Source of the DNA: Sphyrna mokarran
Lineage: Eukaryota
Assembly (NCBI GenBank): GCA_024679065.1
Contig: JAGIQG010000023.1
Coordinates: forward strand, 10,044,001-10,108,000
Direction of reading: 5' to 3'
DNA: 64,000 nt
Notes under the pieces: model-generated
Databases searched by the model: none
What the model was told of the DNA's origin: nothing
Seen by the model: only the letters and a program-made list of their open reading frames with translations
Position numbers and translations under genes: made by a program
Shown here: positions 1,043 to 45,544 of the stretch, one piece after another
Numbering within the stretch: the first letter of the stretch is position 1
Layout: each line of letters begins with the position of its first letter

Positions 1043-1206
1043 TCAACCTCTTAACTCTTTAGGCTTTTGAATCTGCAGTGCTGCATATGTGACTCTTTCC
1101 TCATTGTTAGTGAAGCGGACAGTTTGCTTGCCATGTGTTTCTGCTGAGTTCCCTCGATTGCACTTTACATTGGCATACTCATTTTCTCTTCCAGAACTGC
1201 CAATTG
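1043..1206 (-). CDS. Cytoplasmic-tail exon with ITIM (VTYAAL) and NEYANV tyrosine motif; putative last exon of gene A
   Basis: Pyrimidine tract + cag acceptor (AG at 1208-1207); phase-1 frame [15 protein letters not shown]...[18 protein letters not shown]; phase matches the end of gene B's TM exon. Confidence 0.75.
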
Positions 1207-7200: not shown

Positions 7201-9274
7201 GTCCATTGCCCTCCATCGCTATGAAATAATTTGCCATTCAGAATCATAGAATCCATGCAGTGTACAAGGAGGCCATTTGGCCTATCAAGTTTACAGCGAC
7301 ACTCCCATTGCCATGTATTTTTCCCAAATCCTCATAAAAGTCTGCTCCTTTTTTGCTTCCCTTGTAAAAGCTATTATTGATCCTGTTTCTAATGCAATCC
7401 ATACATTTATAATCACTTGCATCAATAAAATTCTCCCAATTTCCCTCGCTGTTCCTGTTGTGATGATCTTAATGTATTCTCTCAAGCATTCACTCACTTA
7501 CTAGTGGAAATAATTAGTCTCAATTTAACTAATCAAAGCCTCTAATAATTTTGGGTAGACATAGCAGATCATTTCGTTCTATTGTAATGGTTTTCTAGTA
7601 GTGTTAGCTGTTGGTAGCACTCTTGTGTCTGCATCCAGAATGTTCTATATTCAAGCCCTACTCTAGGACTCAAAAATCAAAGCTGATACTCCAGTACCGT
7701 ACTGAGGAAGTGCTGCGCTGTTGGAGGTGCTGTCTTTTGGATGGGATGTTGCACTGAGTCCCCAATCTCCTGCTCTATGGGTCTCATGGTGGCACTGCTG
7801 CCTCACTATGCCAGAGACCCGGGTTCAATTCTGGCCTCAGGTGTCTGTCTGTGTGGACTTTGCATGTTCTCCCCATGTCTGCGTGAGTTTCCTCCAGCTG
7901 CTCCAGTTTCCCCCATAATCCACAGTGTGTGGGTTAGATGGATTAGCCAAGTTAAATTGCCCCTTAGTGTTAGAGAGAACAAGAGTAAATGCATGGGATT
8001 ATGGGAATAAGGCCTGGGTGGAATGATTATTGGTGGAACTCAAATGGTTACCTTCTGCACTGTAGAATTCTATGGATTCTATGAATGTATGGATGTATAA
8101 GATCTGTGGCACTCGATCTCCTGAAGAAATGCAGGAGCGTTATCCCAAATCACCTGGCAATATTTATCCCTCAATCAAAAACAGGTTCTTAGTTCATTCT
8201 TTTGAGTTTGCTGTATGCAAATTGGCTGCTGTGTTTCCTGCCTCACAAGAGCGACAACGCTTCAAAAAGCATTTCATTGGTTGTAAAGTGCTTTGAGAAG
8301 TCAGGTGACAATGAAAATAAACGTGAGACATTCTTTCGTTTTGTAAGTGAGACCTTTTAAAATGCCGTAATTTCACATCAACTCTTTAACTTTCTATCTT
8401 CATCATTCATCCTAAAGCAAGTGACACCAACTAAAGATTGTTTTTCATGATTTGATTTCCAAGAAATGGGAACAGGAATGATTACTGAGATTTTATCAAT
8501 CAAATTCTGTTAAATTTTAATGGGATTACTGCAACGTTTACACATGTTTGGGAAATATCTTATGATCCTGATATTTTCAATCAATAGTTTTATCAGTAAC
8601 TTTGTTCTGATTGGTTGATGGATAAAGAAAAATAAATTTTGTCAGTTGCAAATCATTCAGAGAGGCAGTAGGAAGCTAACCAGCAACCAGAATAGACAAA
8701 CGACAATAAATATTTTAGTGACCACATTGTACATTTACACCATCACTTACCAACACTGTTGATCTGTGTCACATAACTGCAATTCTCCCCTGATATATTG
8801 ATCACTGACACATTAACCATTTCACTGGATTTATTTCCCTGGTTATTTAAGGCTGTGCAGTAATATTGATGATGTCGCTGTGTGAAGGATTGACAATGTA
8901 GATCCAGTTTATTGGTGTCAGAGATCTTTGAATCTTCATTCGGGGTCTTTTCATACCATGTGTACTGAATGGGAAGAGATCCCTGGACAGACTCACAGGA
9001 GACGGACACTGAGCCCCCAGAACATGAGGCATTTGGTCGTGATAAAAATCTAAGTCCAGGAACAGACACAGGTTCTGTGGGCAAAAGGCAATTATGAATG
9101 GATTTTCACAGTAATTTCATTGTCGTCTTAATGTACACCTACGTGTGACACTGAGTTCGAAAAGCTTTAACTTTAAACTTTAAATGATTAAGTTTTAGAA
9201 TGACGAAAAAACTAAATGCTTATTGCCAATATTTCTACACCTCATCCAGGATGTGAGGAGGAAGGGAAAGTGTT

Positions 9275-9308
<34 letters not shown>

Positions 9309-12300
9309 GAGGGAACTTGGCCAAATGCAGATAGTATCTATTGATTGCTCTCACAGATAGTCATGATAGCAGATTAGTTAGTGACAAGCATTGGAGTGTG
9401 AACTGAGATGTTTGCTGAGATAATGGAGACATAAATATTTTTCCTAAAATCTAATCTTGACATGAATTCTCTGATACCGAAGGATCTGCCCTAGTTGCCA
9501 GTTGGAGCAGGGAATTTGACGCTCAGCCAAATCTTCATTCACAGCAGCAGGACTGGAGGATTCCAGCGATGGAAGGCTTTGCTGAACTCTGGCTATTGTC
9601 TGTATTTGTATTCAATATTCATTAGGAAGAACCATTAACATTAAGCTGTGAGTACTGTTTGAAGTCTAGGGTGGAATTTTATCACCTGGATTGAGCGAGA
9701 CTGAAAAACCTGCCCACGGTCAACAGACATTTCCATTGATTGCCCCACACCCACTCTGATACCACGGCGGGCAAGGCAGTAAAATTCCGAGGTAAATATC
9801 ATCCAAAGGTCATGAGCTGGGAGATAGAAGCTATCAGCTTCTCATTAACTGGGGAAACTGGCTTGAAGTGCTCTTTTTGTACTGAGTCCCTTTGTTTTTG
9901 AACTCAGCACTGGAGTCTGACTTCAAACGACAGTGGAGATTTAATAAGCAGAAGGAACTTACTACAGGAGAAGAAATGAGCTGTTGGTGAGTATCTGGTG
10001 AGTATTCGGGAAGTGGTGAAGGCCCAATGTCCAGGCATAGGGAGCATGGATGGTGTCCTTGCCAAATTGTTAACAAGGAGAGATTGGTCTAAGGTGAAAT
10101 AAATCTGACCCCATCTCTCTGGATCATTACTCTGAGCCTCTGAATTACAATTCTTCCAACATAATCATTGTTCTAACTGCCCTCTAGCTGCCAGACACTG
10201 CACTGCTGTGGAACCTCCAGACATCGGAGCTTATCCTCCCAGATAAAGTACCGATCAGTCAGTTCAGTTGAGAGTAATAAAGATAATCACAGAGAACAAT
10301 TTACCATCAGATATTTGTAGTCTTACAGGAAATATTGAAAGTAGCCCGGACTTAGCAATACCACAGCTGTACCATCCTGCATCTCCTGGGCGAAGATCCT
10401 CCATAGTAACGACAAATAATCCTTGTGTCTTCTTATCTGTGATTGAAATTCTCCCTCGCCATCCATCTGGATCGTCTGATTTTACCAAAACAGTGCACTG
10501 ACGACTCCAATATTTCACATGTGACTGGAACAATTTGTCATAGTGACAATCGATAGTGATCGCTCTTCCCAAAACTCCTGTTACATTATTTTTTGCCCAC
10601 AATGCACTTGGAGCTGAAAAGACAACAGGTCAAAAATTGAACTGAAAAAATTGTTTAATACAAACAGATATATTTTAAATAAGATTTAGCACTGTGTTCA
10701 GAGAAATATCTCCAATACATCTTCTAATGTATTTGAATACTTCCTTGATTGAGATCATTGGGCTCATTGAACATGTGCGCTCTGTGGATTGATAATTAAC
10801 AATCATATTGAGATTGCACACTAAGTCCTTTATAAAGCAAGACCTTAAGAGGTATCATTAATCTTTTAGTCCTGGTTGGGATTTGTTCTGTCCACCACAG
10901 GTTTATTTCCATTTTGTACAATAAAAGCACCATTTCTTCACATCCGCTTCCAGGAGTTACTGCATTCTCAAACAGCAATTGTTAGACAGCAAATTGTCTT
11001 CTCATGATCACTTTGCTCTTTGAGGGAGCTTATTGCTTATAAATTGGCGCTAAACTTCCTACATAACAACAAAGGCTCTGAATCAGCATTGATCAGAACA
11101 GACTTCAAAACTGTCTTGAAGTTGTGAAAAATTGAAAAATAAATGCAATTCTATTTTTATTAAAAATTGTTTTGGACGATCATTAGAACTAAGCCCGTGA
11201 GCAATTCAGTTAGACGTTAATTTAAAACTTAACTGAATTTCAGAAGCTTAAAGAGATATTTACCACTGTTGCTGAAATGTGTCACATAAGTGCAATCATT
11301 CTCTGATCTGTTGATCACTGACACAGTAACCATTTCACTGGATTTTTCTCCCTGGTTATTTGAGGCTGTGCAGTAGTATTGATGACGTTGCTGTGTGAAG
11401 GATTGACAACGTAGATCCAGTTTATTGGTGTCAGAAATCTTTGAATCTTCAGACGTGGTCTTTTCATACCATGTGTACTGTATGGGAAGTGATCCCTGGA
11501 CAGACTCACAGGAGATGGACACTGAGCCGCTTGAAAGTGAGGCATTTGGTGATGATAGAAATCTAAGCACAGGAACAGACACAGGTTCTGTGGAAATAAA
11601 AATTATTAACGGATTTTCACAATAATTTCATTGCAGTGTTAATTTAAAACTAGTTGTGACACTAATAAAAAGTTTTAAGTTTAAACTTTAAAAGTTTGAA
11701 TGTGAAAATGACCAAAAAATTACATAGTTTCATATTACCCCCAATATTTCTCCACCTCACTCACAATGTGAGGAGGAAGGGAAAGTGTTAGAGAGAGAGA
11801 GAAGCGTGGCCAAATGTAGGTTGTATCTATTTATTTCTCTCACAAACAGCAGATATTCATGACAGCAGATTAGTTAGTTGCAAGCACTGGAGTGTCACCT
11901 GAGATAGACTGCAGGAGATTGCTGAGATAATGGACACTTAAAAACCTATTCTTGCCCTGAATTCTCCGATATCGAGTGATCTGCTCCCGCTGCCAGTTGG
12001 AATAGGGAATTTGGCACTCTGCAAATCTCCATTCACAGCAATGGGACTGGATAATTCCAGCTACGGACAAGTTTGGTGAATTCCAGCCATTGTTTGTATT
12101 TAACATTCAACAGTATGCACAATTCAACATTTAAGTATGAGTATTGTCTCAAGTCTAAGGCAGGGTTTAATGGCCTCAAATCAAGGAGACTGGAAAATCC
12201 CACCCAAGGTCAACAGACATTTCCATTCTCTGCCCCACACCTGCTTCAATACCATGGCGGGCAAGGCAGTAAAATTCTGACATAAGCATCATCCAAAGGA

Positions 12301-15300
12301 CATGAGTTGGGAGATTGAAGGTCTCAACTGGCAGTAATTGAAATAGTTTAGGGGAAACTGAATTGAACTGCTCTTTTTATACTGAGTCCCTTTGTTTTGG
12401 AACTCAGCAAAGGAGTCTGACATCAACCAAGTGTGGAGGTTTAATGAGCTGAAGGAATTTACTACAGAGTTGTTGGTATCTGATCAGTATTCGGTAAATG
12501 GTCAAGGTCTATTACCCAGGCATAGGGGTATGGGTGGCATCCTTGCCAATTTTTTAACCAGAAGAGCATGGTCCAAGGTGCAATAAATCTGCCCCCATCT
12601 CTCTGGATCATTACTCTGAGCCTCTGAATTCCAATTCCTCCAACATAATCATTGTTCTAACTGCCCTCTAGCTGCCAGACACTGCACTGCAGCAGGGCCT
12701 TGGTATATCATAGAACATAGAACATTACAGCGCAGAACAGGCCCTTTGGCCCTCGATGTTGCACCGACCAATTAAGAAAAAACAATGACCCTCTAACCTA
12801 GACCATTCCCTTTTCATCTATAAACCTATCCACTGACCTCTTAAACGCCTCCAAACTTGGTGCATCTACAACAGCAGCAGGCAGGGCATTCCATACCCTT
12901 ACCACCCTCTGGGTAAAGAAACTACCTCTGACATCCGTCCTATAACTACCAGCCCTTAATTTAAAGCTATGTCCCCTCGTGCTAGCTTTCTCCATCTGAG
13001 GAAAAAGGCTATCACTGTCCACCCTATCTAAACCTCTAATCATCTTATATGTTTCGATAAGGTCCCCTCTTAGCCGCCTCTTTCTAACGAAAACAACCTC
13101 AAATCCCTCAGCCTCTCTTCATAAGACCTGCCCTCCATACCAGGCAACATCCTGGTAAACCTCCTCTGTACCCTCTCCAATGCCTCCACATCTTTCTTAC
13201 AATGTGGGGACCAGAACTGTACACAATACTCCAAGTGCGGCCGCACTAGAGTTTTGTACAGTTGCAACATGATGTTGCGGCTCCGAAATTCAATCCCCCT
13301 ACCAATAAAAGCCAAGACTCTGTATGCCTTCTTAACAACCTTATCGACTTGATTGCCAACTTTCAGGGATCTATGCATATATACACCAAGAACCCTCTAT
13401 TCATCAACACTATTAAGAGATCTACCATTAGCCCTATACTCTACACATTTGTTATTCCTGCCAAAGTGAATTACCTCACACTTTTCCACATTGAACTCCA
13501 TTTGCCACCTCTCGCCCAGCTCTGCAACTTGTCCAAGTCTCTCTGCAAACTGTAACACCCCTCTTCACTATCTACCACTGCTCCAACTTTGGTGTCATCC
13601 GCAAATTTACTAATCCATCCTTCTATACCCTCATCCAGATCATTTATAAAAATTACAAGATCGGAGCTGTCAATGTCTCCTCCCAGATAAAGCAGCAATC
13701 AGACATACTGAGCTTAATAAAGATAATCACTGAGAACAATTTACCTTCAGATATTTGTAGATTTACAGGAAATATTGAAAGGAGGCCGAGCTTATCAATA
13801 CCACAGCTGTACCATCCTGCATCTCCTAAGCGAAGATCCTCCATCGTAACAACAAATAATCCTTGTGTCTTGTTATCTGTGATTGACATTCTCCCTCGCC
13901 GTCCATCTGGATCATCTGATTTTACCAAAACAGAGCACTGACGACTCCAATATTTCATATGTGACTGGGACAATTTGTCATAGTGACATTCGATAGTGAT
14001 CGCTCTTCCCAAAACTCCTGTTACATTATTTTTTGCCTGCAATGTACTTGGAGCTGAAAAGACAACAGGTCAAAATTGAACTCAAAATATTTGTTTAATA
14101 CAAACAGATATATTTCAAAGGGATTTACCACAGTGTTCAGAGAAATGTCTGCAAAACATCTCCGAATGCAATTGAATACTTCCTTGTTTGAGATCGCAGG
14201 TCTCATTGAATATGTGCTATCGTGGATTGATAATTAAAGAACTATTTTGATGTAGTATACTCATCACTTCATGAAGCAAGACCTTGAGAGGTTCCAATAA
14301 TCTTTTAGTCTGATTGTGACCTGTTGTATTCACCGCAGGCATGTGGTTATTGTTTATTTTCATTTTGTACAATAAAAGAACAGCTCCTTCACATCCTGCT
14401 CCTGGAGTTATTATGTTCTCAAACAGCAATTGTCAGATAACAGATTGTCTGCTCATGATCACATTGGTCTATGCGGGAGCTCATTGCTTATAAATTGTGC
14501 TGAGCTTTCCACATCATAACAAAGGATCGGAATCAGTTCCAGCACTGACCAGAACAGACGTTAAAACTGTCCTGAAGTTGTGAAAAGTGAAAAATAAATG
14601 TAATTCAGTTCTATTAAAATTAATTTGAATGACCAATAGAACTAAACCAGTAAGCATTTCAGACAGACATTAATTTAAAAATTAGTTGAAATTTTTGAGG
14701 CTTAAATGGATATTTACCAATGTTGCTGATTTGTGTTAAATAACTGCAATCATTCTCTGAAATGTGGATCACTGACACAGTAACCATTTCACTGGATTTG
14801 TTTCCCTGGTTATTTACGGCTGTGCAGTAATATTGATGATGTCGCTGTGTGAAGGATTGACAATCTAGATCCAGTTTATTGGTGTCAGAGATCTTTGAAT
14901 CTTCAGACGGAGTTTTTTCATACCATGTGTATCGAATGGGAAGTGATCCCTGGACAGACTCACAGGAGATGGACACTGAGCGCCCAGAACATGAAGCATT
15001 TGGTGGTGATAAAAATTCAAGTTCAGGGACAGACACAGGTTCTGTGGGAAAAAAAACAATTATTAACGGATTTTTACAGTAATTTCATTGCAGCGTTAAT
15101 GTAGTTTGCTTGTGACTCAAATAAAGATTTAACTATCAACCTTAAAATTTTACACTTTAGAATGACCAAAAAATTAAATAGTTTTATATTACCAGTATTT
15201 GTCTACCTCACCCAGGATTTGAGGGGAGAAGGAGAGAGAGAGAGAGATTGAAGTAGGAACTTGGCCAAATATAGGTAGTACCTATTGCTTGCTCTCATGG

Positions 15301-18300
15301 AAAGCAGATATTCATAATAGCAGATTAGTTAGTGACAAGCATTGGAGTGTGACCTGAGATAAACTGTGGATGTTTGCTGAGAGAAAGGAGACTCAAATAT
15401 CTTTCTTAAAATCGAATCTTGACCTGAATTCTCCGATATCAAGCGATCTGCCCTCGCTGCCAGTCGGAATAGGGAATTTGGTGCTCAGCCAAATCTCCAT
15501 TCACAGAAGCAGAACTGGAATATGATAGCTTCAGATGAGTTTTGGGAATTCCAGCCATTGTTTATATTTGTATTAACATTCAAAATTAAGTAACATTAAA
15601 CATTTAGATGCGAGTACTATTTCAAGTCTCGGACCGGGTTTCATGGCCTCAAACAGCCAGACTGGAAATTCCCAACCAAGGTCAACAGACATTCCCGTTG
15701 TCTGCCCCACATCTGCTCCAATACCACGACGGGCAAGGCAGTAAAATTCCAATGGAAGAGTCATCCAAGTGACATGATTTGGGAGGTAGAAGCTTTCTGC
15801 TGTCAGCAATTGAATAATTGTGGAAACTAGCTTGAATAGCTCTTTTTCTATTGAGTCTCTTTGTTTTTGGACTCAGCACGGGAGTCTGACTTCAAGCGTG
15901 GAGGTTTAATGAGTTGAAGAATTTACTACAGGAGAAGAAGTGAGCTGTTGGCGATTATTTGGTGATTGTTCGGGAAGTAGTGAAGATCTATTGTCCAGGC
16001 AACAGAAGCATAGATGGGGTCCTTGCCAACTTGTTAACCAGGACAGCATGGTCCAAGGTGCAATAAATCTGCCCCCATCTCTCTCTGGATCATTACTCTA
16101 TACTTCTGAATTACAATTCCTCCAACATAATTATTGTTCTAACTCCTCTCTAGCTCCCAGACACTGCACTGCTGCAGAGCCTCGGGATATCGGAGCTGTC
16201 AATGTCTCCTCCCAGATAAAGCAGCAATCACACATATTGAACGTAATAGAGAAAATCACTGAGAACAATTTACCGTCAGATATTTGTAGATTTACAGGAA
16301 ATATTGAAAGTAGCCCTGGCTTATCAATACCACAAGTGTACCATCCTGCATCTCCTGGGCGAAGATCCTCCATTGTAACAACAAATAATCCTTGTGTCTT
16401 GTTATCTGTGATCGACATTCTCCCTCGCCGTCCATCTGGATCATCTGATTTTACCAAAACAGAGCACTGACGACTCCAATATTTCACATGTGACTGGGAC
16501 AATTTATCAAAGTGACAAGCGATAGCAATCGCTCTTCCCAAAACTCCTGTTACATTATTTTTTGCCCGCAATGCACTCGGAGCTGAAAAGACAAGAGATC
16601 GAAAATTGATCTCAAAATATTTGTTTCATACAAACAGATACACTTCAATGGGATTCACCATAGTGTTCAGAGAAATGTCTGCAATACATCTCCTAATGCA
16701 ATTGAATACTTCCTTGTTAGAGATCGCTGGGCTTATTGAATGTGTGCTCCCTGTCGATTGATAATGAAACAACTATTTTGATGTAGTATACTAAACCCTT
16801 TATAAAGCACGACCTTGAGAGGTTCCAATAATCTATTAGACCTCGTTGGGATCTGTTGTATTCACTACTGGCACGTGGTTATTGTTTATTTTCATTTTGT
16901 ACAATAAAAGATTAGTTCCTTCACATTGTGCTCCTGGAGTTATTATATTCTCAAAGAGCAATTGTCAGACAACAGATTGTCTGCTCATGATCACATTGCT
17001 CTTCCCATGAGCTCATTGCTTATAAATTGTGCTGAGCTTCCCACATCATAACAAAGGATCGGAATCAGTTCCAGTACTGACCAGAACGGACATTAAAGCT
17101 GTCCTGAAGTTGTGAAAAGTGAAAAATAAATGCAATTCAGTTCTATTAAAATTAATTTGAATGACTAATAGAACTGAACCAGTAAGCATTTCAGACAGAC
17201 ATTAATTTAAAAATTAGTTGAAAATTTGAGGCTTTAATTGATATTTACCAATGTTGCTGATTTGTGTTAAATAACTGCAATCATTCTCTGAAATGTGGAT
17301 CACTGACACAGTAACTATTTTACTGGATTTGTTTCCCTGGTTATTTGAGGCTGTGCAGTAATATTGATGATGTTGCTGTGTGAAGGATTGACAATCTAGA
17401 TCCAGTTTATTGGTGTCAGAGATCTTTGAATCTTCAGACGGAGTTTTTTCATACCATGTGTATCGAATGGGAAGTGATCCCTGGACAGACTCACAGGAGA
17501 TGGACACTGAGCCCCCAGAACATGAGGCATTTGGTGGTGATAAAAATTCAAGTTCAGGGACAGACACGGGTTCTGTGGGAACAAAAACAATTATTAACGG
17601 ATCTTTACAGTAATTTCATTGCAGTGTTAATGTACGTTTGCTTGTGACTCAAATAAAGATTTAACTATCAACTTTAAAACTTTAAACTTTAGAATGACCA
17701 AAATATTAAATAGTTCAATATTAACAGTATTTTTCTAACTCACCCAGGATTTGAGAAGAGAAGAAGAGAGAGAGAGATTGCAGTAGGAATTGGCCAAATA
17801 TAGGTAGTACCTATTGATTGCTCTCATGGAAAGCAGATGCTCATGATAGCAGATTAGTTAGTGACAAGCATTGGAGTGTGACCTGAGATAAACTGTGGAT
17901 GTTTGCTGAGAGAAAGGAGACTCAAATATCTTTGTTAAAATCGAATCTTAACCTGAATTCTCCGATATCGAGCGATCCGTCCTTGCTGCCAGTTCGAATA
18001 GGGAATTTGGTGCTCAGCCAAATCTCCATTGACAGCAGCAGGACTGGATAATTCCAGCTGTGGATGAGTTTTGGGAATTCCAGTCATTGATTGTATTTGT
18101 ATTAACATTCAAAATTAAGTAACATTGAACATTTAGATGTGAGTACTATTTCAAGTCTAGGGCAGAGTTTTATGGCTCAAACAGACAGACTGGAAATTCC
18201 CAACCAAAGTCAACAGACATTTCCGTTGTCTGCCCCACATCTGCTCCAATACCACGATGGGCAAGGCAGTAAAATTCCAATGGAAATATCATCCAAAGGA

Positions 18301-27300: not shown

Positions 27301-30300
27301 CATGATAGCAGAATAGTTACGAACAAGCATTGGAGAGTGATAGACTGTGGATATTTGCTGAGAAAACGGAGACTTAAATATCTTTCTGAAAATCCAATCT
27401 TGACCTGAATTCTCTAATATCGAGCGATCTACCACCTGTTAGAATAGGAAATTTGGCACTCAGCCAAATCTCCATTCACAGCAATGGGACTGGATAATTC
27501 CAGCTGTGAACGAGTTTGGTGAACTCCAGCCATTATTTGTAATTGCATTAACATTCAACAGTAAGGACCATTCAACATTTAAGTGTGAATACTATTTCAA
27601 ATCGAGGATGAAGTTTTTTGGCCCCAAATGAGCGAGCCTGGAAAATTCCGCCTAAGGTCAACAGACATTTTCTCTTTTAGCCCCACACCCATTCCAATAC
27701 TGCGGCGGGCAAGGCAGCAAGTATCCTCTCGAGGACATCAGCCAGAGATAGAAGCTATCAGTTGGCAACAACTGAAATAGTTAAATGGGGAAACTGGCTT
27801 GAAATGTTCTTTCTATACTGAATCCGTTTGTTTCTGAACTCAGCACCAAAGCACTTCAACCGAGTATGGAGGCTTAATGAGCCGAAGGAATATACTACAG
27901 GAGGAGAGGTGGTCAAGGTTTATTATCGAAGCATCGGGAGCATTGGTGGGGTCTTTGCCAACTTGTTATCCAGGAGTGTGGTCCAAGATGCAATAAGTCT
28001 GAGCCCATCTCTCTGGATCATTACTCTGAGCTTCTGAATCACAATTCCTCCAACTTAATCATTGTTCTAACTGCCCTCTTGCTGCCAGGCTCTGCACTGC
28101 TGCGGAGTCTCCAGACATCGGAGCTGTCAATGTCTCCTCCCAGATAAAGCACTGATCAGACATTTCACTTGAGAGTAATAAAGATAATCACAGAGAATAA
28201 TTTACCATCAGATATTTGTAGTCTTACAGGAAATATTGAAAGTAGCCCGGACTTAGCAATACCACAGCTGTACCATCCTGCATCTCCTAGGCGAAGATCC
28301 TCCATAGTAACAACAAATAATCCTTGTGTCTTGTTATCTGTGATTGACATTCTCCCTCGCCGTCCATCTGGATCATCTGATTTTACCAAAACAGAGCACT
28401 GACGACTCCAATATTTCACATGTGACTGGGACAATTTGTCATAGTGACAATCGATAGTGATCGCTCTTCCCAAAACTCCTGTTACATTATTTTTTGCCCA
28501 CAATGCACTCGGAGCTGAAAAGACAACAGGTCAAAAATAGAACTGAAAATAATTGTTTAATACAAACGGGTAGACTTCAATAGGATTTACCGCTGTATTC
28601 AGAGAAATCTCTGCAATACATCTTCTAATGCAATTGAATATTTCCTTGTTTGAGATCATTGGAATTATTGAACATTTTTCCTCACAGATTGATAATTAGA
28701 CAACCATATTGAGATTGTACTCATGGATTGATAATTAGACAACCATATTGAGATTGTTTACTAAGCCAATTATAAAGCAAGACCTTGAGAGGTTCCATTA
28801 ATCTGCTGGTCCTAGTTGGGATCTGTTGTGTTCAACTCAGGCATGTGGTTATTGTTTACTTTCATTTTGTACAATAAAAGAACAGTTCCTTCACATCCAG
28901 CTCCTGGATGCGAAGTGTGTCCTCAAGCAGTAATTGTCAGACAGCAGATTGTCTGCTCATGATCACATTGCTCTTGCAGGGAGCTTATTGCTTACAAATT
29001 AGTTGCAGGGTAGAACAGTGGTTAGCACTGTTGCTTCACACCTCCAGAGCCCTGGGTTTGATTCCAGCTTGAGTCACTGTCTGTGTGGAGTTTGCACATT
29101 CTCCGTGTGTCTGCGTGGGTTTCCTTCAGTGGGTGAATCTTCCTTCAGTCCAAATATGTGTGGGTTAGGTTGATTGGTCATGCTAAAAATTGCCCCTTAG
29201 TGTCCTGAGATGTGTAGGTTAGAGGGATTAGTGGGTAAAATATGTAGAGATATGAGGGTGGGATTGTGGTCAGTGCAGATCAATGGGCCAAAGGGCCTCT
29301 TTTTGCACTGCAGGGTTCTATGGTCTATGGCGCTGAGCTTCCTACTTCACAACAACGGCCCTGAATCAGTTCCAGTATTGACCAAAACAGACTTTAAAAC
29401 TGTCCTGAAGTTGTGAAAAGTGATAAATAAATGCAATTCTATTTTTATTAAAATTGCTTTGAACAACCAATAGAACTAAAGCCGCGAGCAATTCAGACAG
29501 ACATTAATTTAAAAAATAGTTGAAATTTTTGAAGCTTAAAGTGACCATTACCAATGTTGCTGATTTGTGTTAAATAACTACAATCATTCTCTGAAATGTG
29601 GATCACTGACACAGTAATCATTTCACTGGATTTGTTTCCCTGGTTATTTGAGGCTGTGCAGTAATATTGATGATGTCGCTGTGTGAAGGATTGACAATGT
29701 AGATCCAGTTTATTGGAGTCAGAGATCTTTGAATCCTCAGATGGAGTCTTTTCATACCATGTGTACTGAATGGGAAGTGATCCCTGGACAGACTCACAGG
29801 AGACGGACACTGAGCCCCCAGAACATGAGGCATTTGGTGCTGGTAGAAATTTAAGTTCAGGAGCAGACACGGGTTCTGTAGGAAAAAGTCAATCATTAAT
29901 GGATTTTCACAGCCACTTCATTGCAGTGTTAATGTAAGCTTGCTTGTGACACTGAGTAAAAAAAAGCTTTAACATTAAACTTTAAATAATTAAACTTCAG
30001 AATGACCACAAAAATTACATAGTTTCATATTACCAGTATCTCTCCACCTCACTCAGGATGTGAAGAGGAAGGGAAAATGTTAGAGAGAGAGAGAGAGAGA
30101 TGGCAGTGGGAAGTTGGCCAAATGCAGGTAGTATCTGTTGATTGCTCTCACAGGCAACAGATATTCATGTTAGCAGATTAGTTAGTAACAAGCATTGGAG
30201 TGTGACCTGAGATAAACTGTGGATGTTTACTGAGAGAACAGAGGCTTAAATATCTTTTCTAAAATCTAATCTTAACCTGAATTCTCCGATATCGAGCGAT

Positions 30301-33300
30301 CCGCCCTCACTGCCAGTTGGAATAGGGAATTTGGCACTCAGTCAAATCTTCATTGACAGCAGCGGGACTGGATAATCCCAGCTGCAGATAAGCTTTGTGA
30401 ATTCCAGCCATTGTTTGTATTTGCATTTAACATTCAACAGTCAGTATCATTCGACATTTAAGCATCAGTACTGTTTCAAGTCCACAGAGAGGTTTTATGG
30501 CCCCGAACAAGTGAGACTGGAAAATCCCACTCAACGTCAACAGACATTTCCGTTGCCTGCCCCACACCTGCTCCAATACCACGGTGGGCAAGGCAATAAA
30601 TTTCCAACATAAGTATCCTCCAAAGGACATCAACTAGGAGATAGAAGATATCAACTGGTTGCCGCTGAAATAGTTAATTGGGAAAATTGGCTTGAACTCA
30701 TCGTTTTGTTCTGATTTCCTTTGTTTTTGAACTCAGTACTAGAGTCTGACATCAACCGTATGTACAGGTTTAATGAACTGAAGGAATTTATTACAGGAGA
30801 AGAAGCGAGCTGTTGCTGAGTATCTGATGAGTATTCAGGAAATGGTCAAAGTCTATGGTCCAGACAACGGGCGCATGGGTGGGGTCCTTGCCAACATGTT
30901 ATCCAGGACAGTGGGGTCCAAAGTGCAATAAATCTGCCCTCATCTCTCTGGATCATTACTCTGAGCCTCTGAATTTACAATTCCTCCAACATAATCATTG
31001 TTCTAACTGCCCTCTAGCTGCCAGACTCTGCACTGCTGTGGAGCCTCCAGACATCGGATCTATCAATGTCCCCTCCCAGACAGAACAAAGAACAAAGAAC
31101 AAAGAACAAAACAGCACGGAAACAGGCCCTTCGGCCCAACAAGCCTGCGCTGCCACCCCGATGTTCCACCTCTACCCATGATCCCTGTCTACGTTTATAG
31201 ATCTATGGGTTAAAAACTAAATTTGAGACAATTTAGGGAGAATTTGTTTTGCCAATTAGCCTAAGATAAAGCACTGATCAGACATTTCAACTGAGAGTAA
31301 TAAAGATAATCACTGAGAACAATTTACCTTCAGATATTTGTAGCTTTACAGGAAATATTGAAAGGAGGCCGGGTTTATCAATACCACAGCTGTACCATCC
31401 TGCATCTCCTGAGCGAAGATCCTCCATCGTAACAACAAATAATCCTTGTGTCTTGTTATCTGTGATCGACATTCTCCCTCGCCGTCCATCTGGATCGTTT
31501 GATTTTACTAAAACAGAGCACTGACGGCTCCAATATTTCACATGTGACTGGGACAATTTGCCATAGTGGCAATCGATAGTGATCGTTCTTCCCAAAATTC
31601 CTGTTACGTTAGGTTTTGCCCGCAATGCACTTGGAGCTAAAGACAACAGGTCAAAAATTGAACTGAAAATAATTGTTTACTTCAAACAAATATATTCAGG
31701 AGGATTTACTACTCTGTTCACAGAAATCTCTTCAATACATCTACTAATGAAATTGAATACCACCGTGTTTGATATTTTTGGGCCAATTGAATATGTGCTC
31801 CCTGCAAATTAATCATTAAACCACCATATTGAGATTTTATGCTAAGCACTTAATAAAGTAAAACATTAAGGGGTTGCATTAATCTTTTAGTGCTGTTTAG
31901 GATCTGTTTTGTTCACCACAAGAGTGTGGTTCCTATTTTTTTTTTATTTTGTACAATAAAAGCACGCTTATTTCACATCCAGTTCCTGGAGTTATTATAT
32001 TCTCAAACAGCAATTGTCAGACAGCAGATTGTCTGCTCATGATCACATTGCTCTTTGAGGAAACTTATTGCTCATAAATTGGCACTGAACTTCCTACGTC
32101 ACAGCAATGGCTCTGAATCAGTTCCAGCATTGATCAGAACAGACTTTAAAACTATTCTGAAATTATGAAAATTGACAGATAAATGTAATTTTATTTTTTT
32201 TTTAATTTCCTTGAATGGCTAATAGAACTAAACTCATGAGCAATTCAGACAGACATTAATTTAAAAATTAGTTGCAGTTTTTGAAGCTGGAAATGATATT
32301 TACCAATATCACTGATTTGTGTTAAATAACTGCAATCGTTCTCTGAAATGTAAATCACTGCCACTGTAACCATTTCACTGGATTTTTGTCCCTGGTTATT
32401 TGAGGCTGTGCAGTAATAGTGATGGTGTTGCTCTGTGAAGCGTTGACAATGTAGATCCAGTTTATTGGTGTCAGAGATCTTTGAATCTTCACACTGGGTC
32501 TTTTCATACCATGTGTACTGAATGGGAAGTGATCCCTGGACAGACTCACAGGAGACGGACACTGAGCCCCCAGAACATGAGGCATTTGGTGCTGATAGAA
32601 ATTTCAGTTCAGGAGCAGACACGGGTTCTGTGGGAAAGAAACAAACATTCAGATTCTGTGTGAACATCTAAAAGTAAAACACTCTGTGAATTTCAGCTCA
32701 TCAACCACTCATTCAGGGTCAGTCATGTTGCAATCTCACCAACATATCTCGCTCTCCATATCTCTCCACCCTCCAAGCAGCCTGAACTATAGTGTCTCCT
32801 ATTATGTCAGAACATAGCAGCTCTCCAAGTCAGACCATGAACCAGGAGATAAAGACTTCAATTAATTGGTGAATGGATTAGGGGAGATTTGGGACAATGG
32901 GTTATTTCACTCGGGGGATGCTGAGAGTCCAGAATTCACTGCCTGGAAGAGTGGTGAAGAGTGGGAGATGTGGATACCTGATCACATTAAACAAAATGGA
33001 TTAAACTTGAGATGCTGTAACCGACAGGGCTCTGGATCAAGAACTAAATAGTGGGATCAGATTGGATTGCTTGTCCTGCCATCCCAGTGTGGCACAGTGA
33101 TTAGCACTGCAACCTCACAAAACCAGGGACCTGGATTCAATTTCAGCATTGGCTGTGTGGTCAGTGCACACTCTCCCCGTGCCTGCACGGTTTTTCTCTG
33201 GGTACTTCAGTTTCCCCCCACAACCAAAGATATGCATAGATCCATGAGGAGATGGTGGTCTAGTGGTATTATTGCTAGCCTATTAATCGAGAATCTTAGT

Positions 33301-36300
33301 TAATGTTCTGGGGGCCCAGGTTCGAATCCCTCGACGGCAGGTGATAGAATTTGATTTCAATGAAGAAAATCTGGAATTAAGAATCTACTGATGACCATGA
33401 AACCATTGTCGGTGTTGGAAAAACCCATTTGGTTCACTAATGCCTGTTAGGGAATGAAATCTACCATCCTTTCCTGATCTGGCCTACATACGATGCCAGA
33501 ACCAAAACAATATGATGAATTCTTAACCATCCCCTAAAATGGCCTCGCAAACCTTTCGGGATGGGCAATAGATGCCACTCAGCCAGCAATACACGTGTCC
33601 CCAGATGAATGAAAAACAAATATTTGCACTCCTAACAGGTGCCAGGCACTGCCAATGTGGGTGGTGCTGGCGGGGGGAGGGAAAGGAATGGCATACCAAA
33701 GGGTGGGGCCTATTGAGGGCTCAAAGAGTTACATAGAACATAGAACATTACAGCACAGAAGTTGGGGGACTTTCACTAATACCGTGCACTGGGATTTATG
33801 GGACAGGGAAAGTGGAGGGCAATCAGCATTGGCCATCTGGGTAGGGGGAAATCGGAACTGGCCATCTGGGTAGGGAGAGATTGGGGCTGGCCCAGGAGAC
33901 CTCTGGTAGATCAGTGGTCGGATGGTGGTGAGGGGAGTCGGGACAGTCAGTGATCGGGAGGCCAGCGGTGATGAGGCCAATGCACATGCGCCAATATCTG
34001 CAGTGACAGATCAGAGTATGTGCTGTGGTCCATTCAGAACTATGCTGTGGGCCTCTCCAGTGGGATTTGGACCCGTGGACCACATTTCAGACTCAATCAC
34101 TCTGTATTGGAGAAGCGTTCTAGTTGTTGTCAAATAAGCCTCTTCAGACACTGGAATTCCAACACATCACGGAAGCTGATCAGGAAACGTGTACTCCCTG
34201 TGTTGTGGGATTGCCCATCAGCGAGCTGCTTGTCTCTGTTCATTCCTTTGTCTTGTGGAGCTCAGGTCTATGCGGAGGAGGCAGTTGCTGCTCTTGATGG
34301 TATTGATCTCATCTGAGCCCAAAATAAAACAGCCTGAAAACCACTCATGCTGATCTGGTAGATACAATCGCCAAAATGTCATCCAGAAATACACATTCCC
34401 AACACTGTTGTGAAAGTCAGCACCCTGTAAATACTAATGTTAAACCTTTCACCAATCCGGCTAGAAATAAACAGTGAGGGTCCAATGCTTCTTGGCATCT
34501 TTCCCAGTCACTTCTTCAGCCTCCCCCATTGCCTCTGTCTTCTGCCCTTGCTCAGTAACCCGAGCAGCCGCAGGTAGATTCCACCAATTACACTCACTGA
34601 CTGATTAATAGACTGAGACTGATAACCCATCTCTCAGCGGGAGATTTCATCACACACAGATTGACACATTTAAAAGTTTCCTTGGAACTTTTTATGATCA
34701 TTTGGAATGTTTGGAAAATGGGGTCCAATTCTGTTCACAACACAACCAGAATGACATGGAGGCTTTGGAGAGAGTAGAGAAAAGGTTTACCAGGATGTTG
34801 CCTGGTATGGAGGGTATTAACTATGAGGAGAGATTGAATAAATTGGGATTGTTCTCCCTGGAAAGATGGAGGCTGAGGGCCACCTGATAGAAATTTATAA
34901 AATTATGAAAGTTATAAGAACAACAAAGAATAAAGAACAACACAGCACGGGAAACAGGCCATTCGGCCCAACGAGCCCGCGCTGCCGTCCTAACGTCTTA
35001 ATGACATATAGAGATCAATATAGGCACAATTTGTTACGCAATCAGCCTAAGAGCACATTTTTGGGATGTGGGAGGAAACTGGAGCACCTGGAGAAAACCC
35101 ACGCAACCACGGGGAGAACGCGCAAACTCCCGCAGACACAGGCCCAAATCCATGTGTCTGCACAGCAACAGCGATAGTCTGTGAGCTGTCATGTTGCCCA
35201 TCAGATGGTCCAGTTTAAGCATACACTAACGACGTGAAGCACTAGGCCACTCCTGAAGTAACATCCAAGAGCAGCCCTCGCACGACCTGCCGAATGCATG
35301 CACCTTGTTGGTCAACTAGGTGGACCGATTAGCCTGTGGAAACAAATAAAGTATTTAAACAGTCCTCCTATATCCCTCTATCTGCAGACCGCTCATGTGG
35401 CTGTCCAAGAGACCCTTAAACAACCCTAGCGTGCCTGCTCCCACCACCTTACTTGGTAGTGCATTCCACACCCCCACTACCCTTTGTGTGAAAAAATGCC
35501 CTCTAATATTAGTCTTATACATTGCCCCCCTCACCCTAAGGCCGTGACCCCTCGTTCTATCCGAATCTAATGGTGGAAAAAGCTTACCACCATTTACTCT
35601 ATCTATACCCCTCATAATCTTATATACCTCTAATAGATCCCTTCTCAGCCGACGTCTTTCAAGGGAAAACAACCCCAGTGCGTTCAATCTTTCCTCGTAA
35701 GACAGCCTTTCCATACCAGGCAGCATCCTGGTAAAACTCCTCTGCACTCTCTCCAGGGCCTCCACATCCTTCCGGTAGTACGGCAACCAGAACTGGATGC
35801 AGTACTCCAAGTGAGGCCTAACCAACGTTCTATACACTTGCAACATCAGACTCCTACTCTTGTATTCTATACCCCTTACTATGAAGGCTAACATACCATA
35901 CGCTTTCTTTATCACTTTCTCCACCTGTACTGACACCTTCAGAGACTTGTGAACCTGCACCCCCAGGTCTCTGCGTCTCTATACTCCGGATAGTTTTACC
36001 TTTTATCTTATAACTCCCCTCTACATTATTCCGGCCAAAATGCATCACCTCGCATTTATCTGGATTAATTTCCATTTGCCATCTATCTGCCCAATCTACC
36101 AACCTATCTATGTCCTGTTGTATTGCCTGGCACTGCTCCTCAGTCCCCGCCAATCCAAGCATCTTAGTGTCATCAGCAAATTTGCTGATCACACCACCTA
36201 CCCCTCTTCCAAGTCATTTATATAAATCACAAATAGAAGAGGTCCTAGTACTGAGCCCTGTGGCACACCACTAGTGACTGACCTCCAGTTGGAAAAAGAG

Positions 36301-39300
36301 CCTTCCACTACTACCCGCTGTCTCCTCCTCCCAAGCCAGTTCTCAACCCATCTACATACCTGGCCCTGTATCCCATGCGCCTTCAACTTTTTTATCAGCC
36401 TACCATGGGGAACCTTGTCAAACGCCTTACTGAAATCCATGTAGACGACATCAACGGCTTGTCCTTCATCAATGGTTTTTGTCACCTCTTCAAAAAATTC
36501 CACTAGATTCGTAAGGCACGACCTCCCCTTAACGAAGCCATGCTGCGTATCCCTGATCAGATTGCAGCGCTCCAGATGTTCATACATCCTGTCCCTGAGA
36601 ATCCTCTCCATTAGCTTACCTATAACTGAAGTCAAGCTCACCGGCCTATAGTTCCCTGGGTTATCCTTCTGACCCTTTTTAAACAACGGTTTATAGATAG
36701 AATGAACAGTTGGAAACTTTTCCCAGGGCAAAAATGACAATTACAAAGGGGCAGAATTCAAGATTGGGGGGGAAAGATTCAGTAGAAATGTGCAGATGAA
36801 CTTTTTTACACAGGCTGTGGTGGGGATCTGGAACACACTGCCAAGTGAGGTGTTTGAAGCAGATACATTAGCCACATTTCAGACTTATCGTGACAGACAT
36901 AAGAACAAACAGGGAGGAGAGGGATATAAGCACTTCGTCTAGGTAGGTAAATGCGATTGGTGTAGGCTTGGAGGGCCGAAGGACCTGTTCCTTTGCTGTC
37001 CTGTTCTTTGTTCTTTGATTCTTTTAAGGGGCTTTCACCATATTGGATTATTTAATTGTTAAATTTGCCAATTTGTTTACTTTTAACCTGTTAGCTTCAC
37101 CCTGAATTTTCAGTGGTTTATTTGAAAGAAGCACAAACTGACACATTGCGGATACATATGGATATTGGGAGTTTGACTGGCTTTCCAACATATTGTCATT
37201 TTCTGTATATTTAACCCCTCTGTGCTCCCCCACCCACCCTACAGCCCCACCATTCACTGCTAAACCAACAAGGTACAATTACTACCAACTGACTGCTCAC
37301 TTCACTTTGTTAATGTCTGACTATTAGATTGATGCTGACTGTAAAAAATCTGACAGTGTGATGTTTAATACATTTCAGAGAGAGAAAAAAGTCTGAGTAT
37401 CGCAAGTAATGTCTTTCATAATATTGCATCATTAAAGGATTTGTTAGTCTAATAATGTTTGAAGTTTTTGGTCAGAATGTTGGACAGACCACGAATTGAG
37501 TTTGTGTCACAAGAGTCAGATTTCCAGGTCTCTGCCCTCTAGCAGTCAGACTCTGCATTACTGCAGACCCTCGGGATATCGGAGCTTTCAATGTTTCCTT
37601 ATGAATAAAACATGGATCAGACATTTCAGTAATAAAGAAATTGAGAATAACACACCATGAGATATTTGCAGCTCCACAGTAAATGCTGGATCTTGGCCAA
37701 CTGTATGAATTGCACAGCTGTACCATCCTGCATCTCCGACGTTAAGATCCTCCATTGTAACAACAAATATTCCTTGTGCCTTGTTATCTGTGATTGACAT
37801 TCTCCCTCGCCGTCCATCTGGATCATTTGTTCTCACTAAATATGAGCACAGGTCAGTCCAACCCTGACACCAATATTTCACATTTTCTTTGTATTGTTCA
37901 GTATAATTGCAATTTATTGTGATCGCTCTTCCCACAATTCCTGTGACTCTCTTTTCTGCCCACAATGCACCTGAAACTGAGGAGACAACATTTCAGCTAT
38001 TGACCAAGTAAATAACTGCTTAATGCAGAGAGAAACATTTTAACAAGATTTACCACTGTGCACAGAGGAAACTCTCCAATATCTGTATTCATCATTCTCT
38101 TTCTAGTTTGTGCTGAATGAAAACATGAATATAAAGCCATGCTGTCAGTGCTAAAGTACTTCAGTGCCAATGATTTCTTGTTAATGTGTAGTGGCCATTG
38201 TTATTGTGTCACTTGTCACTCAAGCTTTGCACTGGTGCCTCTGAGTGAATGGATTGAAGGGTCAGGTCCCACTCCAGAGACTGGAGTATAAAATCTACAG
38301 GAACATTCCAGTGTAATACTGAGGGATGAGATGGCTCAGAATTTCCTCATCCAGTCATGTTCACACAGCTCAGTGATGACTTTCAGGTGAAAGGTTAATC
38401 TGATGCCCAGGCCTGGAGGGTCCCTGTCATGGAGAAAATCCCGGGAATGACTTTAATTTCAAAGCCCCGAGATTGGGAATGGAACTAGAATCGGGCTGGC
38501 ATTCATACAAATGTGATTTGTTCAACTCTGGAATGTCTTAAATTCATCATCTGCCTCAAGTGAAGTGGGATTTTGGATGAACAGAAGTGTGTGTGGAATC
38601 TGGAATGCGCAGATTAGAATATTGAAGAAAAGGTCTGAATTTGGTGGATTCTTATTGGACAGCCAGGGTGCACTTTCTGGAGAAGGAAGTTACCCTTTGG
38701 GAGGGGAGAGTTACTCTTTGGGGCAAACTCTGGTGAGTGGTCAAGGCCAGAGTGATTATTTGGTTGTTTAAATTATTTTATTTATGAACCATGGCGCTGG
38801 GGCAGGGACACAGGCCTTGTGTCCAGCTCGCCTCCAGGCTGAACAGCGTGTGGATTGGTTCCTGGGTCGCCTACAAAAGCTCATTTTTATTACTTTTCCC
38901 GACTCAGTAAACACGGCTCAGGGACGGCAATCTGGGCCTCAGTCTGCCCCACAGGTCAATGCACCAGGAATGACACATTACTCAGCATAAAATGCAATGA
39001 GGATTCCCGAGGCTGGTTCCTGGGATAAGGGGATGGAATGGGAACAGGTTGAATCCACAAGGTGCAAGTCGGTTGGAAGAATGAGAGGTGATTGAATTGA
39101 AATGGGTAAAATTCTTAAGGAGCTTGACAGGATACACTTTGAGCATATATATACCATCCTACCAGGGTTGGGCATTCTGCAACACAGGGTCACAATTTCA
39201 AAATAAAGTGACAGACACAAAGGATGTGATGAGGGGATTTTTATTCACTCACAGTGTTGCGGATTTTTGGAATTCATCCCAGGGAGCTTTAGATGTTCAA

Positions 39301-42435: not shown

Positions 42436-42964
42436 GACAAATTTTGTATCAATGCTGATCTTCTCACTGTTGCAAACACAGCTCTGCATTTGGCATCTGT
42501 ACTTATTGTACATTCACAGAGTTTCTATCTCACACCACCCTGAGGACAGCAACACATTGTTCTTGCAGTTTCAAATCATGAACATTGCAAGTTGCAGCAA
42601 ACATGAACTTGCATTTATTTCCAATGTTAATCTCTCTCTTTGCCTTTCTCATCAACCATTAAAGAATTTGAGGAGTTAATGGAAAATTGCGTAAATTGGT
42701 GCTTATTTAGGATGGAGCCGTCACTCACAGAATTCTATACACAATAAAAAATAATCAAACGTTGGAACCATTTAGAAAATTCAGAACTCTGAGTACAATC
42801 TGTTACACGTGGGTAAGAACTTCTCTCTGAGTAAATCTAAGGTTAGAACTCTCATTGACCACAACCGTGGGTAGAGAAACATGTTTATTGTTTATTATTA
42901 ACTCATTGGTGGAATCAACAACAACAGCAATAACTTGCTCTTTATGAAGTGCCTTTCATGATAA

Positions 42965-43268
42965 AATCCTGTAGTGCAGATGGAGGCCATTCGGCCCATC
43001 GAGACTGCTCAATGCCACCCAGACCTTATCCCTGTAACTCCTCATATTTACCCCGCTAATCCCTTGATACAATGGGGCAATTTAACATTGGCAATGAATC
43101 TAACCTTCACATCTTTGAATTGTGGGATGAAACCAGAGCTCCTGGAAGAAATTCACACAGACCATGGGGAGGAAATTGTGCAAATTCCACACTGCCAGTC
43201 ACCCAATTTCAGAATTGAACCTCGATACCTGGCACTGTGAGGCAGCGGTGCTAACCACTGTGCCACCA
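42965..43268 (-). mobile_element. HE1-like SINE (mirror at 47573-48722, there interrupted by CR1)
   Basis: Family motifs. Confidence 0.8.
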
Positions 43269-43632
43269 TACTGCCTAGTAAAACCTCCTCAGGCATTTTA
43301 TGACATCAGACAAGTGTTGTTGCTGAAGCAAAGATTAGATCAAAGAGGTCAGTTTCTGGGAGAGGTTGCTGGAGTTTTGAATGCCGACAATTGGAAAAGT
43401 TACTGTTAGCGGTGTAGTGAAGAATTGGAAATACATGAGAAGCCAGAGTTGGGGAAACACAAGATTCACAGAAACATTTGTAAAGATAGGGACTGACAAG
43501 ACCATGGAGAAATTCAAATCAGGGAAATGAGAATTTAATATTGAGCTTATTTGATATTGGGAACCACTCAATGAGTTCATACACATGAATGAAGGGCATT
43601 CATGGTTATCACATCATGTATGATGTAGAGTA

Positions 43633-43966
43633 ATCATAGAATCATAGAAACCCCACTGTGCAAAAGGAGGCCATTTGGCCCATTGAATCTGCACTAACAG
43701 CAATCCCACCTAGACCATATTCCCGTTATCCTACAAATGCCTCTAAACTAGTCATCGTGGAACATCAAGAGGCAATTTAGCATGGCCAAAGCTCCTAACC
43801 TGCACGTCTTTGGACAATGGAAGGAAACAGGAGCACCCAGAGGAAACCCACACAGAAATGGGGAGAACGTGTAAACTCCACACAGACAGTTACCTCAGCC
43901 GGAGCTTGAGTCCAAGTTTCTGGTTCTGTGAGGCAGCAATACTAACCACAATGCAAATTGTGCCAC
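43633..43966 (-). mobile_element. HE1-like SINE (mirror at 46911-47235)
   Basis: Family motifs. Confidence 0.8.
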
Positions 43967-44059
43967 CTATACTCTTTAAATTCATCACCAGGACAGATAT
44001 AAGTTGAAACTCATTAAAGGATCTTTTGCCAAGCAAAGTCACTACATACAAACACACAA

Positions 44060-45210: not shown

Positions 45211-45411
45211 GCATTCAGCTACTTGTTATTTCCTCAAAGAGTCCCAAAACATTAGCCAAGCATGACTTCTCTTTCACAAAACCAGTTGAATGCATAACCT
45301 CTTTAATAATAACAGAACATAGAACATCGAACAGTACAGCACATCACAGGTCCTTCAGCCCTCAGTGTTGTCCAAGCTATGTCCAAACCCAAGATCCACT
45401 CCCTATGTGGA

Positions 45412-45528
45412 GTGGAGATGTGATGTGGAGGTGTGATGCGGTGATGCGATGTGGAGATGCTGGCGTTGGACTTGGGTGGGAACAGTAAGAAGCCTCACAT
45501 CACCAGATTAAAGTCCAACACATTTGTT
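45412..45528. mobile_element. Penelope-like terminal fragment in the palindrome spacer
   Basis: Same end sequence as 49989 (gatgtggagatgctgg..aaagtccaaca), with stuttered gatgtg repeats. Confidence 0.65.
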
Positions 45529-45544
45529 CAGCATTGTAAAGGAT

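Follow-up and report, generated by a model that had tools for sequence, protein, structure and literature searches.

MDIRs are barely studied receptors of cartilaginous fishes that combine V domains of the pIgR/CD300 type with C2 domains of the Fc receptor homologue type, and those described by Cannon et al. 2006 (Immunogenetics 58:362) reportedly have one to six immunoglobulin (Ig) domains. According to one report, the MDIR family resembles CD300, TREM, and pIgR, and carp SITR is a soluble relative with two Ig domains and a CD300/MDIR-like V domain (PMC3031540). Another source describes DICPs, known from teleosts and holosteans, with D1-D2 or D1a-D2a-D1b-D2b ectodomains, which occur in inhibitory, activating, and secreted forms (bioRxiv 10.1101/2021.06.11.448072), and a published survey reported no pIgR or FcRL homologues in sharks (PMC4016189). 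Here, we analyzed 64,000 nucleotides of the Sphyrna mokarran genome (GenBank assembly GCA_024679065.1, contig JAGIQG010000023.1, positions 10,044,001 to 10,108,000; hereafter the window, to which all coordinates refer), which contain on the minus strand a gene for a predicted protein with 20 Ig domains (gene A) and, inverted on the plus strand, a smaller paralogue (paralogue B). Gene A is an extreme member of the known MDIR family, giant forms of which are already visible as unreviewed predictions.

A six-frame listing of open reading frames (ORFs), combined with in-frame extension, revealed ten V-like and ten C2-like open blocks on the minus strand, which alternated strictly between 8.7 and 38 kb; gene A as a whole spans from ~40.6 kb down to ~0.9 kb (table 1, in which V exons are numbered V1 to V10 and C2-type exons C1 to C10). 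Each of the 20 Ig exons has a length that is a multiple of 3, an AG before it, a GT after it, phase 1 at both ends, and no stop codon, and together with the leader and a stalk exon they make up 22 intact exons. The Ig exons amount to 6,333 nt, and the coding length through the stalk exon is 6,440 nt, or ~2,146 codons; the searches were performed exon by exon or with database proteins, and the protein length was obtained solely as the arithmetic sum of the exon lengths. A preliminary description of the window had proposed a single gene with a ~2150-residue ectodomain of ten V and ten C2 domains alternating behind one leader, encoded by phase 1-1 exons that had GT-AG sites, lacked stops and frameshifts, showed only indels in multiples of 3, and were rich in N-glycosylation sequons, with introns that had taken up long interspersed nuclear element (LINE) insertions and indels of hundreds of bp. 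The exon mapping agreed with this layout in all 20 exons and supported a single gene: 38 N-X-S/T sequons were counted, the exon indels were the 12 + 6 nt that distinguish V1 from V2-V10 and 9 nt in C3, and the introns contained unit-specific insertions or deletions of 953, 329, 328, 262, 188, 186, and 112 nt as well as a LINE fragment with a reverse transcriptase domain (RVT_1, 1.1e-28). The preliminary description had placed the protein at 8751-37976, that is, between the first base of V1 (37976) and the last base of C10 (8751); the leader at 40611-40647, which lies outside these limits, is the sole leader upstream of the array; elsewhere in the window, a leader match was obtained only for paralogue B.

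The individual exons showed a regular construction. V exons are 309 nt long, and V1 is 315 or 321 nt depending on whether the acceptor at 37976 or the one at 37970 is used, both of which are in phase. The V exon of paralogue B likewise has two acceptors at this 6-nt spacing (54731-54737, plus strand). In both genes, the choice between them would keep or skip Val-Ser at the signal-peptide junction, and the Mustelus asterias models use the upstream acceptor. C2-type exons are 324 nt long with the distal donor, the exception being C3 with 315 nt, and this donor (G/GTAAAT, GTAATG, or GTAAGT, the slash marking the splice junction) was found in all ten; a proximal site, cag/GTTATT, which the exons numbered C2 and C9 do not conserve, was therefore rejected as the principal donor. 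Pfam assigned the V exons to V-set (6.5e-13 and 2.4e-11) and the C2-type exons to Ig_C17orf99, Ig_2, and Ig_3 (~1e-6). V1 encodes four cysteines, including an extra C-C' pair, and V2-V10 encode three, one cysteine of the extra pair having been lost via a 4-residue deletion. The C2-type exons mostly encode five cysteines. We also noted that C1 has a sixth (TQCED) and that C9, with four, has the NASC cysteine replaced and reads NASL; thus, the odd-cysteine number varies between units. Inter-domain disulfides were considered and set aside, as no simple pairing scheme fits the cysteine counts of all units.

We addressed the relationships of gene A by comparing its exons with protein structures and with sequence databases. 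In the PDB, the V exons matched pIgR at 1.7e-41 (summed over domains) and CLM-1/CD300f at 5e-19, and the V2-type exon matched the same two proteins at 1.6e-35 and 8e-16; further matches of the V exons were NKp44 and, for V1, TREM. The C2-type exon matched FCRL5 (chain 9loc_A, 5e-42) in four stretches. A search with exon C4 among 1.84 billion representatives returned 956 proteins at E <= 0.001, of which 40 were at E <= 1e-30, and all proteins whose source was looked up were chondrichthyan. Searches with two of these relatives recovered skate MDIR2, 3, and 5 together with proteins of sharks, rays, skates, and Callorhinchus, a weak match to rabbit FCRL5 being one exception: P0001, an M. asterias relative with 85% identity to C4 of the window, matched MDIR3 at 4.9e-182, and P0027 matched MDIR2, 3, and 5. 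When hidden Markov models built from the window exons were applied to MDIR3, it read V-V-C-V-C, and the C2-to-V junction inferred for gene A recurs both in MDIR3 of skate and in gene models of M. asterias. Gene A has V domains like those of CD300, pIgR, and TREM, Fc-receptor-homologue C2 domains arranged with them in modules, and a direct relation to the skate MDIRs; the type I membrane receptor layout, with a transmembrane (TM) segment plus, in most forms, an immunoreceptor tyrosine-based inhibitory motif (ITIM) or a charged TM residue, is missing from gene A, and paralogue B retains a TM segment with an arginine. Judged by these matches, gene A is a member of the elasmobranch MDIR family.

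The relatives also placed the size of gene A in context. NCBI lists such proteins under the automatic family names "polymeric immunoglobulin receptor-like," "Fc receptor-like protein 5," "CMRF35-like," and "titin-like." Among 47 relatives of 690-2195 aa that were examined, the commonest architecture was six Ig domains, (V-C2)x3, with one TM segment. Larger forms were present as Gnomon models: in Amblyraja radiata, LOC116987004 has 2193 aa, 19 Ig domains, a single leader, one TM segment, and an ITIM tail, and LOC116986997 has 2000 aa, 18 Ig domains, and a single leader, with the TM segment kept; in M. asterias, a "titin-like" model of 1314 aa reads leader-(V-C2)x6, which gives 12 Ig domains, and lacks a TM segment. 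The earlier statement that no described family member has such an architecture therefore does not stand, given the MDIR family and these models with 12, 18, and 19 Ig domains. In the limited collection of literature searched, no description of giant MDIR-type proteins was found, and no protein encoded by the window was present in the databases searched, the best identities being 75-91%, to M. asterias proteins. One relative, P0014, was rejected as a spliced product and represents a read-through genomic ORF.

The origin of the array became apparent from paralogue B, which has a single V-C2 pair and whose later exons lie beyond the window. The upstream region, leader, and V exon of B matched gene A from 41665 to 36691 with 86% identity, the V-C2 intron of B matched the V1-C1 intron of A, and the C2-type exon of B and everything after it matched A from C10 downwards. 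From this matching pattern, gene A is a gene of the B layout to which nine internal units have been added. A single unit spans 2061-3454 bp and consists of one internal-type C2 exon and one V2-type V exon. The domain trees likewise separated the N-terminal V1 type from the internal V2 type, and the internal C2 type (C1-C9) from a membrane-proximal type comprising C10, the C2-type exon of B, and the last C2 of the M. asterias receptors. Units 4-7 were 4.7-8.6% apart in their introns, and for the outer units this distance rose to 18-27%, which fits growth of the array from the middle by unequal crossing-over. In the domain tree, the units of the window clustered apart from all M. asterias units, and from this separation the expansions are, as far as trees can tell, lineage-specific or homogenised. 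In addition, similarity among the units is mosaic: when units 2 and 9 were compared (U2-U9), the V exons differed by 0.029 and the C2-type exons by 0.114, indicating that exchange among units, and with paralogues, occurs. Tandem Repeats Finder returned 0 rows for the array, the method being blind to a 2.5-kb period. We also observed that A and B lie head to head within an inverted segmental duplication (42437-49208) with its symmetry axis near 45-46 kb; for example, 46001-47675 matched 44870-43172 at 83%, and 48511-49208 matched 43173-42437 at 84%.

The 3' end of gene A differs from that of its relatives. The stalk exon is intact, and both exons after it are broken. Compared with paralogue B, which agrees with the M. 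asterias protein at the TM junction, the TM exon remnant reads AC in place of the AG acceptor, is missing 5 nt close to its 5' end, and has lost its donor through a deletion of 21 nt. In the cytoplasmic exon remnant, the frame shifts once at the first motif, and a single premature stop precedes the conserved C-terminal motif. Reading through the C10 donor leads to a stop after 2 codons, and reading through the stalk donor leads to a stop after 17 codons. Given the three lesions of the TM exon, and both a frameshift and a stop in the ITIM exon, any product of gene A is probably secreted. The preliminary description had omitted both broken exons, and their loss shifts the functional reading of gene A from a receptor to a secreted protein or a decaying gene. 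The TM segment of B contains an arginine (VLGRLGAN), a mark of activating-type receptors; this position is occupied by valine in the gene A remnant and in the M. asterias relative.

The Ig exons were far better preserved than the introns between them. The mean pairwise p-distance was 0.071 for the C2-type exons and 0.064 for the V exons, compared with 0.176 for the introns, and a sliding conservation profile along the unit had two peaks, which coincided exactly with the two exons. Whereas 94 distinct gap events, 18 of them multiples of 3, were counted over 1909 core columns of the introns, the 633 exon columns contained a single gap event, of 9 nt and in frame, compared with ~31 expected at the intron rate, although indel-prone simple sequence in the introns inflates this contrast. 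Unit-specific indels numbered 69 in introns and 1 (in frame) in exons, and singleton substitutions per site were 0.11-0.15 in exons and 0.26 in introns. None of the ~190 substitutions on the exon trees created a stop codon, whereas ~9.4 would be expected under neutrality, and at least five lesions in the TM and cytoplasmic remnants (76 and 272 nt as mapped) stand against none in the 6,333 nt of Ig exons. In a codon model, omega was 0.48 for V2-V10, significantly below 1 (twice the log-likelihood difference from omega = 1 at the same kappa, 8.8; 1 degree of freedom). Pooled Nei-Gojobori ratios were 0.43 for the V and 0.54 for the C2-type exons, and between A and B the ratio was 0.70 for V1 and 0.58 for C10. 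On these counts, the reading frame is strongly protected and the amino-acid sequence only moderately so, and this does not in itself prove a present function. The exchange among units and with paralogues is a further caveat on the contrast. Moderate amino-acid constraint is usual in the Ig domains of immune receptors. The purifying selection claimed in the preliminary description, which had suggested comparing dN/dS (the ratio of nonsynonymous to synonymous rates, omega) among units, was partly supported: the exon-intron contrast upheld it, selection on substitutions was moderate in the V exons, and it did not extend with significance to the C2-type exons, which are considered next.

To account for these observations, we propose that an internal genomic unit of one C2-type exon and one V2-type V exon was amplified to nine copies by unequal crossing-over in a V-C2 receptor gene. 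Since both exons of the unit are phase 1-1, every copy stays in frame, and the outcome is leader-V1-(C2-V)x9-C2-stalk, in which the ancestral membrane anchor and inhibitory tail have decayed. Expression of gene A would yield a soluble glycoprotein of ~2,150 residues and 20 Ig domains with ten V domains in a row, which might bind repetitive ligands with high avidity, either in humoral or mucosal defence or by acting as a decoy for membrane-bound paralogues. On balance we lean, without great assurance, towards gene A being such a soluble multivalent derivative of an inhibitory MDIR. A bolder proposal, which we offer tentatively and hold to be possible rather than probable, is that sharks make from an inhibitory MDIR a secreted humoral poly-Ig rod of ~2,150 residues and 20 Ig domains, whose ten CD300/pIgR-type V domains form a high-avidity binder, directed perhaps at microbial or altered-self surfaces or, in the manner of secretory component, at polymeric Ig; in this view, unequal crossing-over would lengthen and shorten the arrays, and the giants would have arisen independently in sharks and skates. 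Several observations weigh against a functional soluble protein. The loss of the TM and ITIM exons is equally expected of a dying receptor gene, and the stalk donor, which lacks an in-frame partner, could bring about nonsense-mediated decay. Omega for C1-C10 was 0.77 in the codon model and not significantly below 1 (twice the log-likelihood difference, 1.4), and nonsynonymous to synonymous singletons numbered 21:13 in the V and 32:17 in the C2-type exons, a sign of mild amino-acid constraint only. A search for matching sequencing runs returned a single candidate, holding 0.06 of the words, and a search with the V7 exon for short predicted proteins, as possible RNA contigs, gave no candidates. 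The separation of the units from all M. asterias units means that there is no evidence of unit-for-unit conservation of the array, and gene conversion from functional paralogues of the cluster could keep the exons clean without selection on gene A itself.

The main rival reading, conceivable if in our view rather unlikely, is that gene A is a recently dead receptor gene, whose array stays open through the youth of its units and through homogenisation by unequal crossing-over or by conversion with functional paralogues. Such a history would suit the lesions of the TM and cytoplasmic exons, the omega of the C2-type exons, the outcome of the run and V7 searches, the mosaic similarity of the U2-U9 comparison as a trace of exchange, and the clustering of units by genome. 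However, the oldest units are 18-26% apart in their introns and yet have no exon frameshift or stop, the unit-specific indels avoid the exons, conversion tracts would not be expected to end at the exon borders with which the conservation peaks coincide, and the splice sites are intact in all 20 Ig exons, the leader, and the stalk. Alternatively, and with less likelihood, the array could be a store of cassettes that yields mainly shorter isoforms of one to a few modules, some of them ending at a candidate terminal exon in the C2-to-V introns. As all 20 exons are phase-symmetric, any subset would splice in frame, and each of the six C2-to-V introns inspected contained a ~30-codon open stretch, a homologue of which ends the M. 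asterias "titin-like" (V-C2)x6 model as its C-terminal tail, with a phase-1 acceptor, cag/GA, in five of the six copies and an internal AATAAA in five of the six. This stretch was nevertheless rejected as a conserved terminal exon because its conservation, 0.81-0.84, is no higher than that of the surrounding intron, and some copies are frameshifted or differ in where the frame ends. We consider it very improbable that the protein is still anchored in the membrane through a cryptic acceptor upstream of the TM remnant: the hydrophobic segment still lies in a long open frame, and a phase-compatible AG at ~3970 would join it to the stalk, other AGs joining it to C10 directly, but such acceptors, all located in a LINE-derived stretch, are weak, neither the normal acceptor nor the donor remains, and the cytoplasmic exon is broken. 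A copy number of ten that merely reflects an assembly artefact would be just as surprising, for although three adjacent units of 2529-2531 bp are alike, no two units are closer than 4.7% in their introns, several units have private insertions or deletions, and the window contains no N and no gaps.

If gene A is expressed, the MDIR family would be able to convert an inhibitory receptor of the cell surface into a soluble protein of large size and many binding domains, amplification of an exon pair would be a means of tuning valency quickly, and such proteins would be candidates for the Ig-binding and pattern-binding molecules of elasmobranch mucosal and humoral immunity. If it is not expressed, the locus would be a clear example of how exons of symmetric phase can hold a tandem array open well beyond the decay of the remaining gene.

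Further observations were made in the introns. The LINE fragments at 12798-13378 and 35355-36740 belong to one family and have similar C-terminal ORFs, RVT_1 being detected in the latter only, and in both A and B the TM exon is directly preceded by a similar LINE 3' piece. Two sites in the stalk-TM intron, 6116-6241 (plus strand) and 60142-60264 (minus strand), matched the C-terminal 42 residues of P0152, a model from M. asterias; in both places the match is on the strand opposite to the gene, which suggests that the C-terminus of P0152 is an annotation artefact or a repeat-derived sequence.

Table 1. Coordinates of gene A, paralogue B, and associated features in the window
Feature	Position	Strand	Remarks
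Leader exon, gene A	40611-40647	-	12 residues and first base of next codon; donor G/GTGAGT, phase 1
V1	37656-37976	-	CD300/pIgR-type V domain; 4 Cys including extra C-C' pair
V2	31328-31636	-	V exon
V3	28206-28514	-	V exon
V4	25669-25977	-	V exon
V5	23600-23908	-	V exon
V6	21333-21641	-	V exon
V7	18803-19111	-	V exon
V8	16274-16582	-	V exon
V9	13745-14053	-	V exon
V10	10305-10613	-	V exon
C1	32304-32627	-	C2-type exon
C2	29552-29875	-	C2-type exon
C3	26646-26960	-	C2-type exon
C4	24576-24899	-	C2-type exon
C5	22308-22631	-	C2-type exon
C6	19778-20101	-	C2-type exon
C7	17249-17572	-	C2-type exon
C8	14718-15041	-	C2-type exon
C9	11264-11587	-	C2-type exon
C10	8751-9074	-	C2-type exon
Array C1-V2-C2-...-V10-C10	8751-32627	-	Nine units, then membrane-proximal-type C10
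Stalk exon, gene A	6367-6436	-	70 nt, phase 1 to 2, intact; tttcag before, AG/GTATGT after
TM exon remnant	3743-3818	-	Three lesions relative to paralogue B
Cytoplasmic exon remnant	935-1206	-	ITIM-type motifs in relatives
Paralogue B	52028-62718	+	Inverted, single V-C2 pair; later exons beyond window
Leader exon, B	52028-52064	+	
V exon, B	54731-55051	+	
C2-type exon, B	58200-58523	+	
Stalk exon, B	59947-60016	+	
TM exon, B	62630-62718	+	
LINE reverse transcriptase fragment	35355-36740	-	In V1-C1 intron; RVT_1, 1.1e-28
LINE fragment	12798-13378	-	Inside 953-nt insertion private to unit 8
~30-codon open stretch	14313-14402	-	C2-to-V intron
~30-codon open stretch	16845-16934	-	C2-to-V intron
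~30-codon open stretch	19374-19463	-	C2-to-V intron
~30-codon open stretch	21903-21992	-	C2-to-V intron
~30-codon open stretch	24171-24260	-	C2-to-V intron
~30-codon open stretch	28809-28919	-	C2-to-V intron

Several known systems share part of the organization of gene A. DICPs and SITR resemble it in having alternating or soluble Ig forms, a likeness drawn from their descriptions only, but they have at most four Ig domains. FCRL5 has a long multi-Ig ectodomain, and its Ig domains are those matched by the C2-type exons; it is, however, a membrane receptor without V domains, and the C2-only ectodomain of the FCRL proteins is not what gene A encodes, in which V-set exons alternate with C2-type exons. 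CLM-1 of the CD300/CLM group gave the best single-domain match to the V exons, and the extra C-C' pair of this group is kept in V1, but CD300 proteins have one V domain and no C2 in a single V-stalk-TM layout, whereas gene A has ten V and ten C2 domains. With pIgR and secretory component, gene A shares the V type and the presence of several V domains, and a soluble, heavily glycosylated end form such as that of secretory component is predicted for gene A as well. pIgR differs in having 2-5 V domains and no C2, and it becomes soluble by cleavage and not by exon loss; instead of tandem V domains alone with a TM segment and a sorting tail, gene A has a C2-type exon between every pair of V exons and a broken TM exon. 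The closest likeness is to MDIR1-5 of the clearnose skate, which combine a CD300/pIgR-like V with an FcR-like C2 in the order seen in gene A and share its C2-to-V junction; a multigene cluster and, in relatives, ITIM tails are shared family traits. Compared with MDIR3, which reads as five domains, gene A is extended to 20 Ig domains and no longer has intact TM and ITIM exons. The Gnomon giants of A. radiata and M. asterias are built like gene A in that a single leader precedes a long alternation of V and C2 domains; unlike gene A, the skate models keep the TM segment and one of them keeps the ITIM tail, whereas the M. asterias model, like gene A, is without a TM segment. As the V2-type units of the window cluster apart from the M. 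asterias units, the expansions look lineage-specific.

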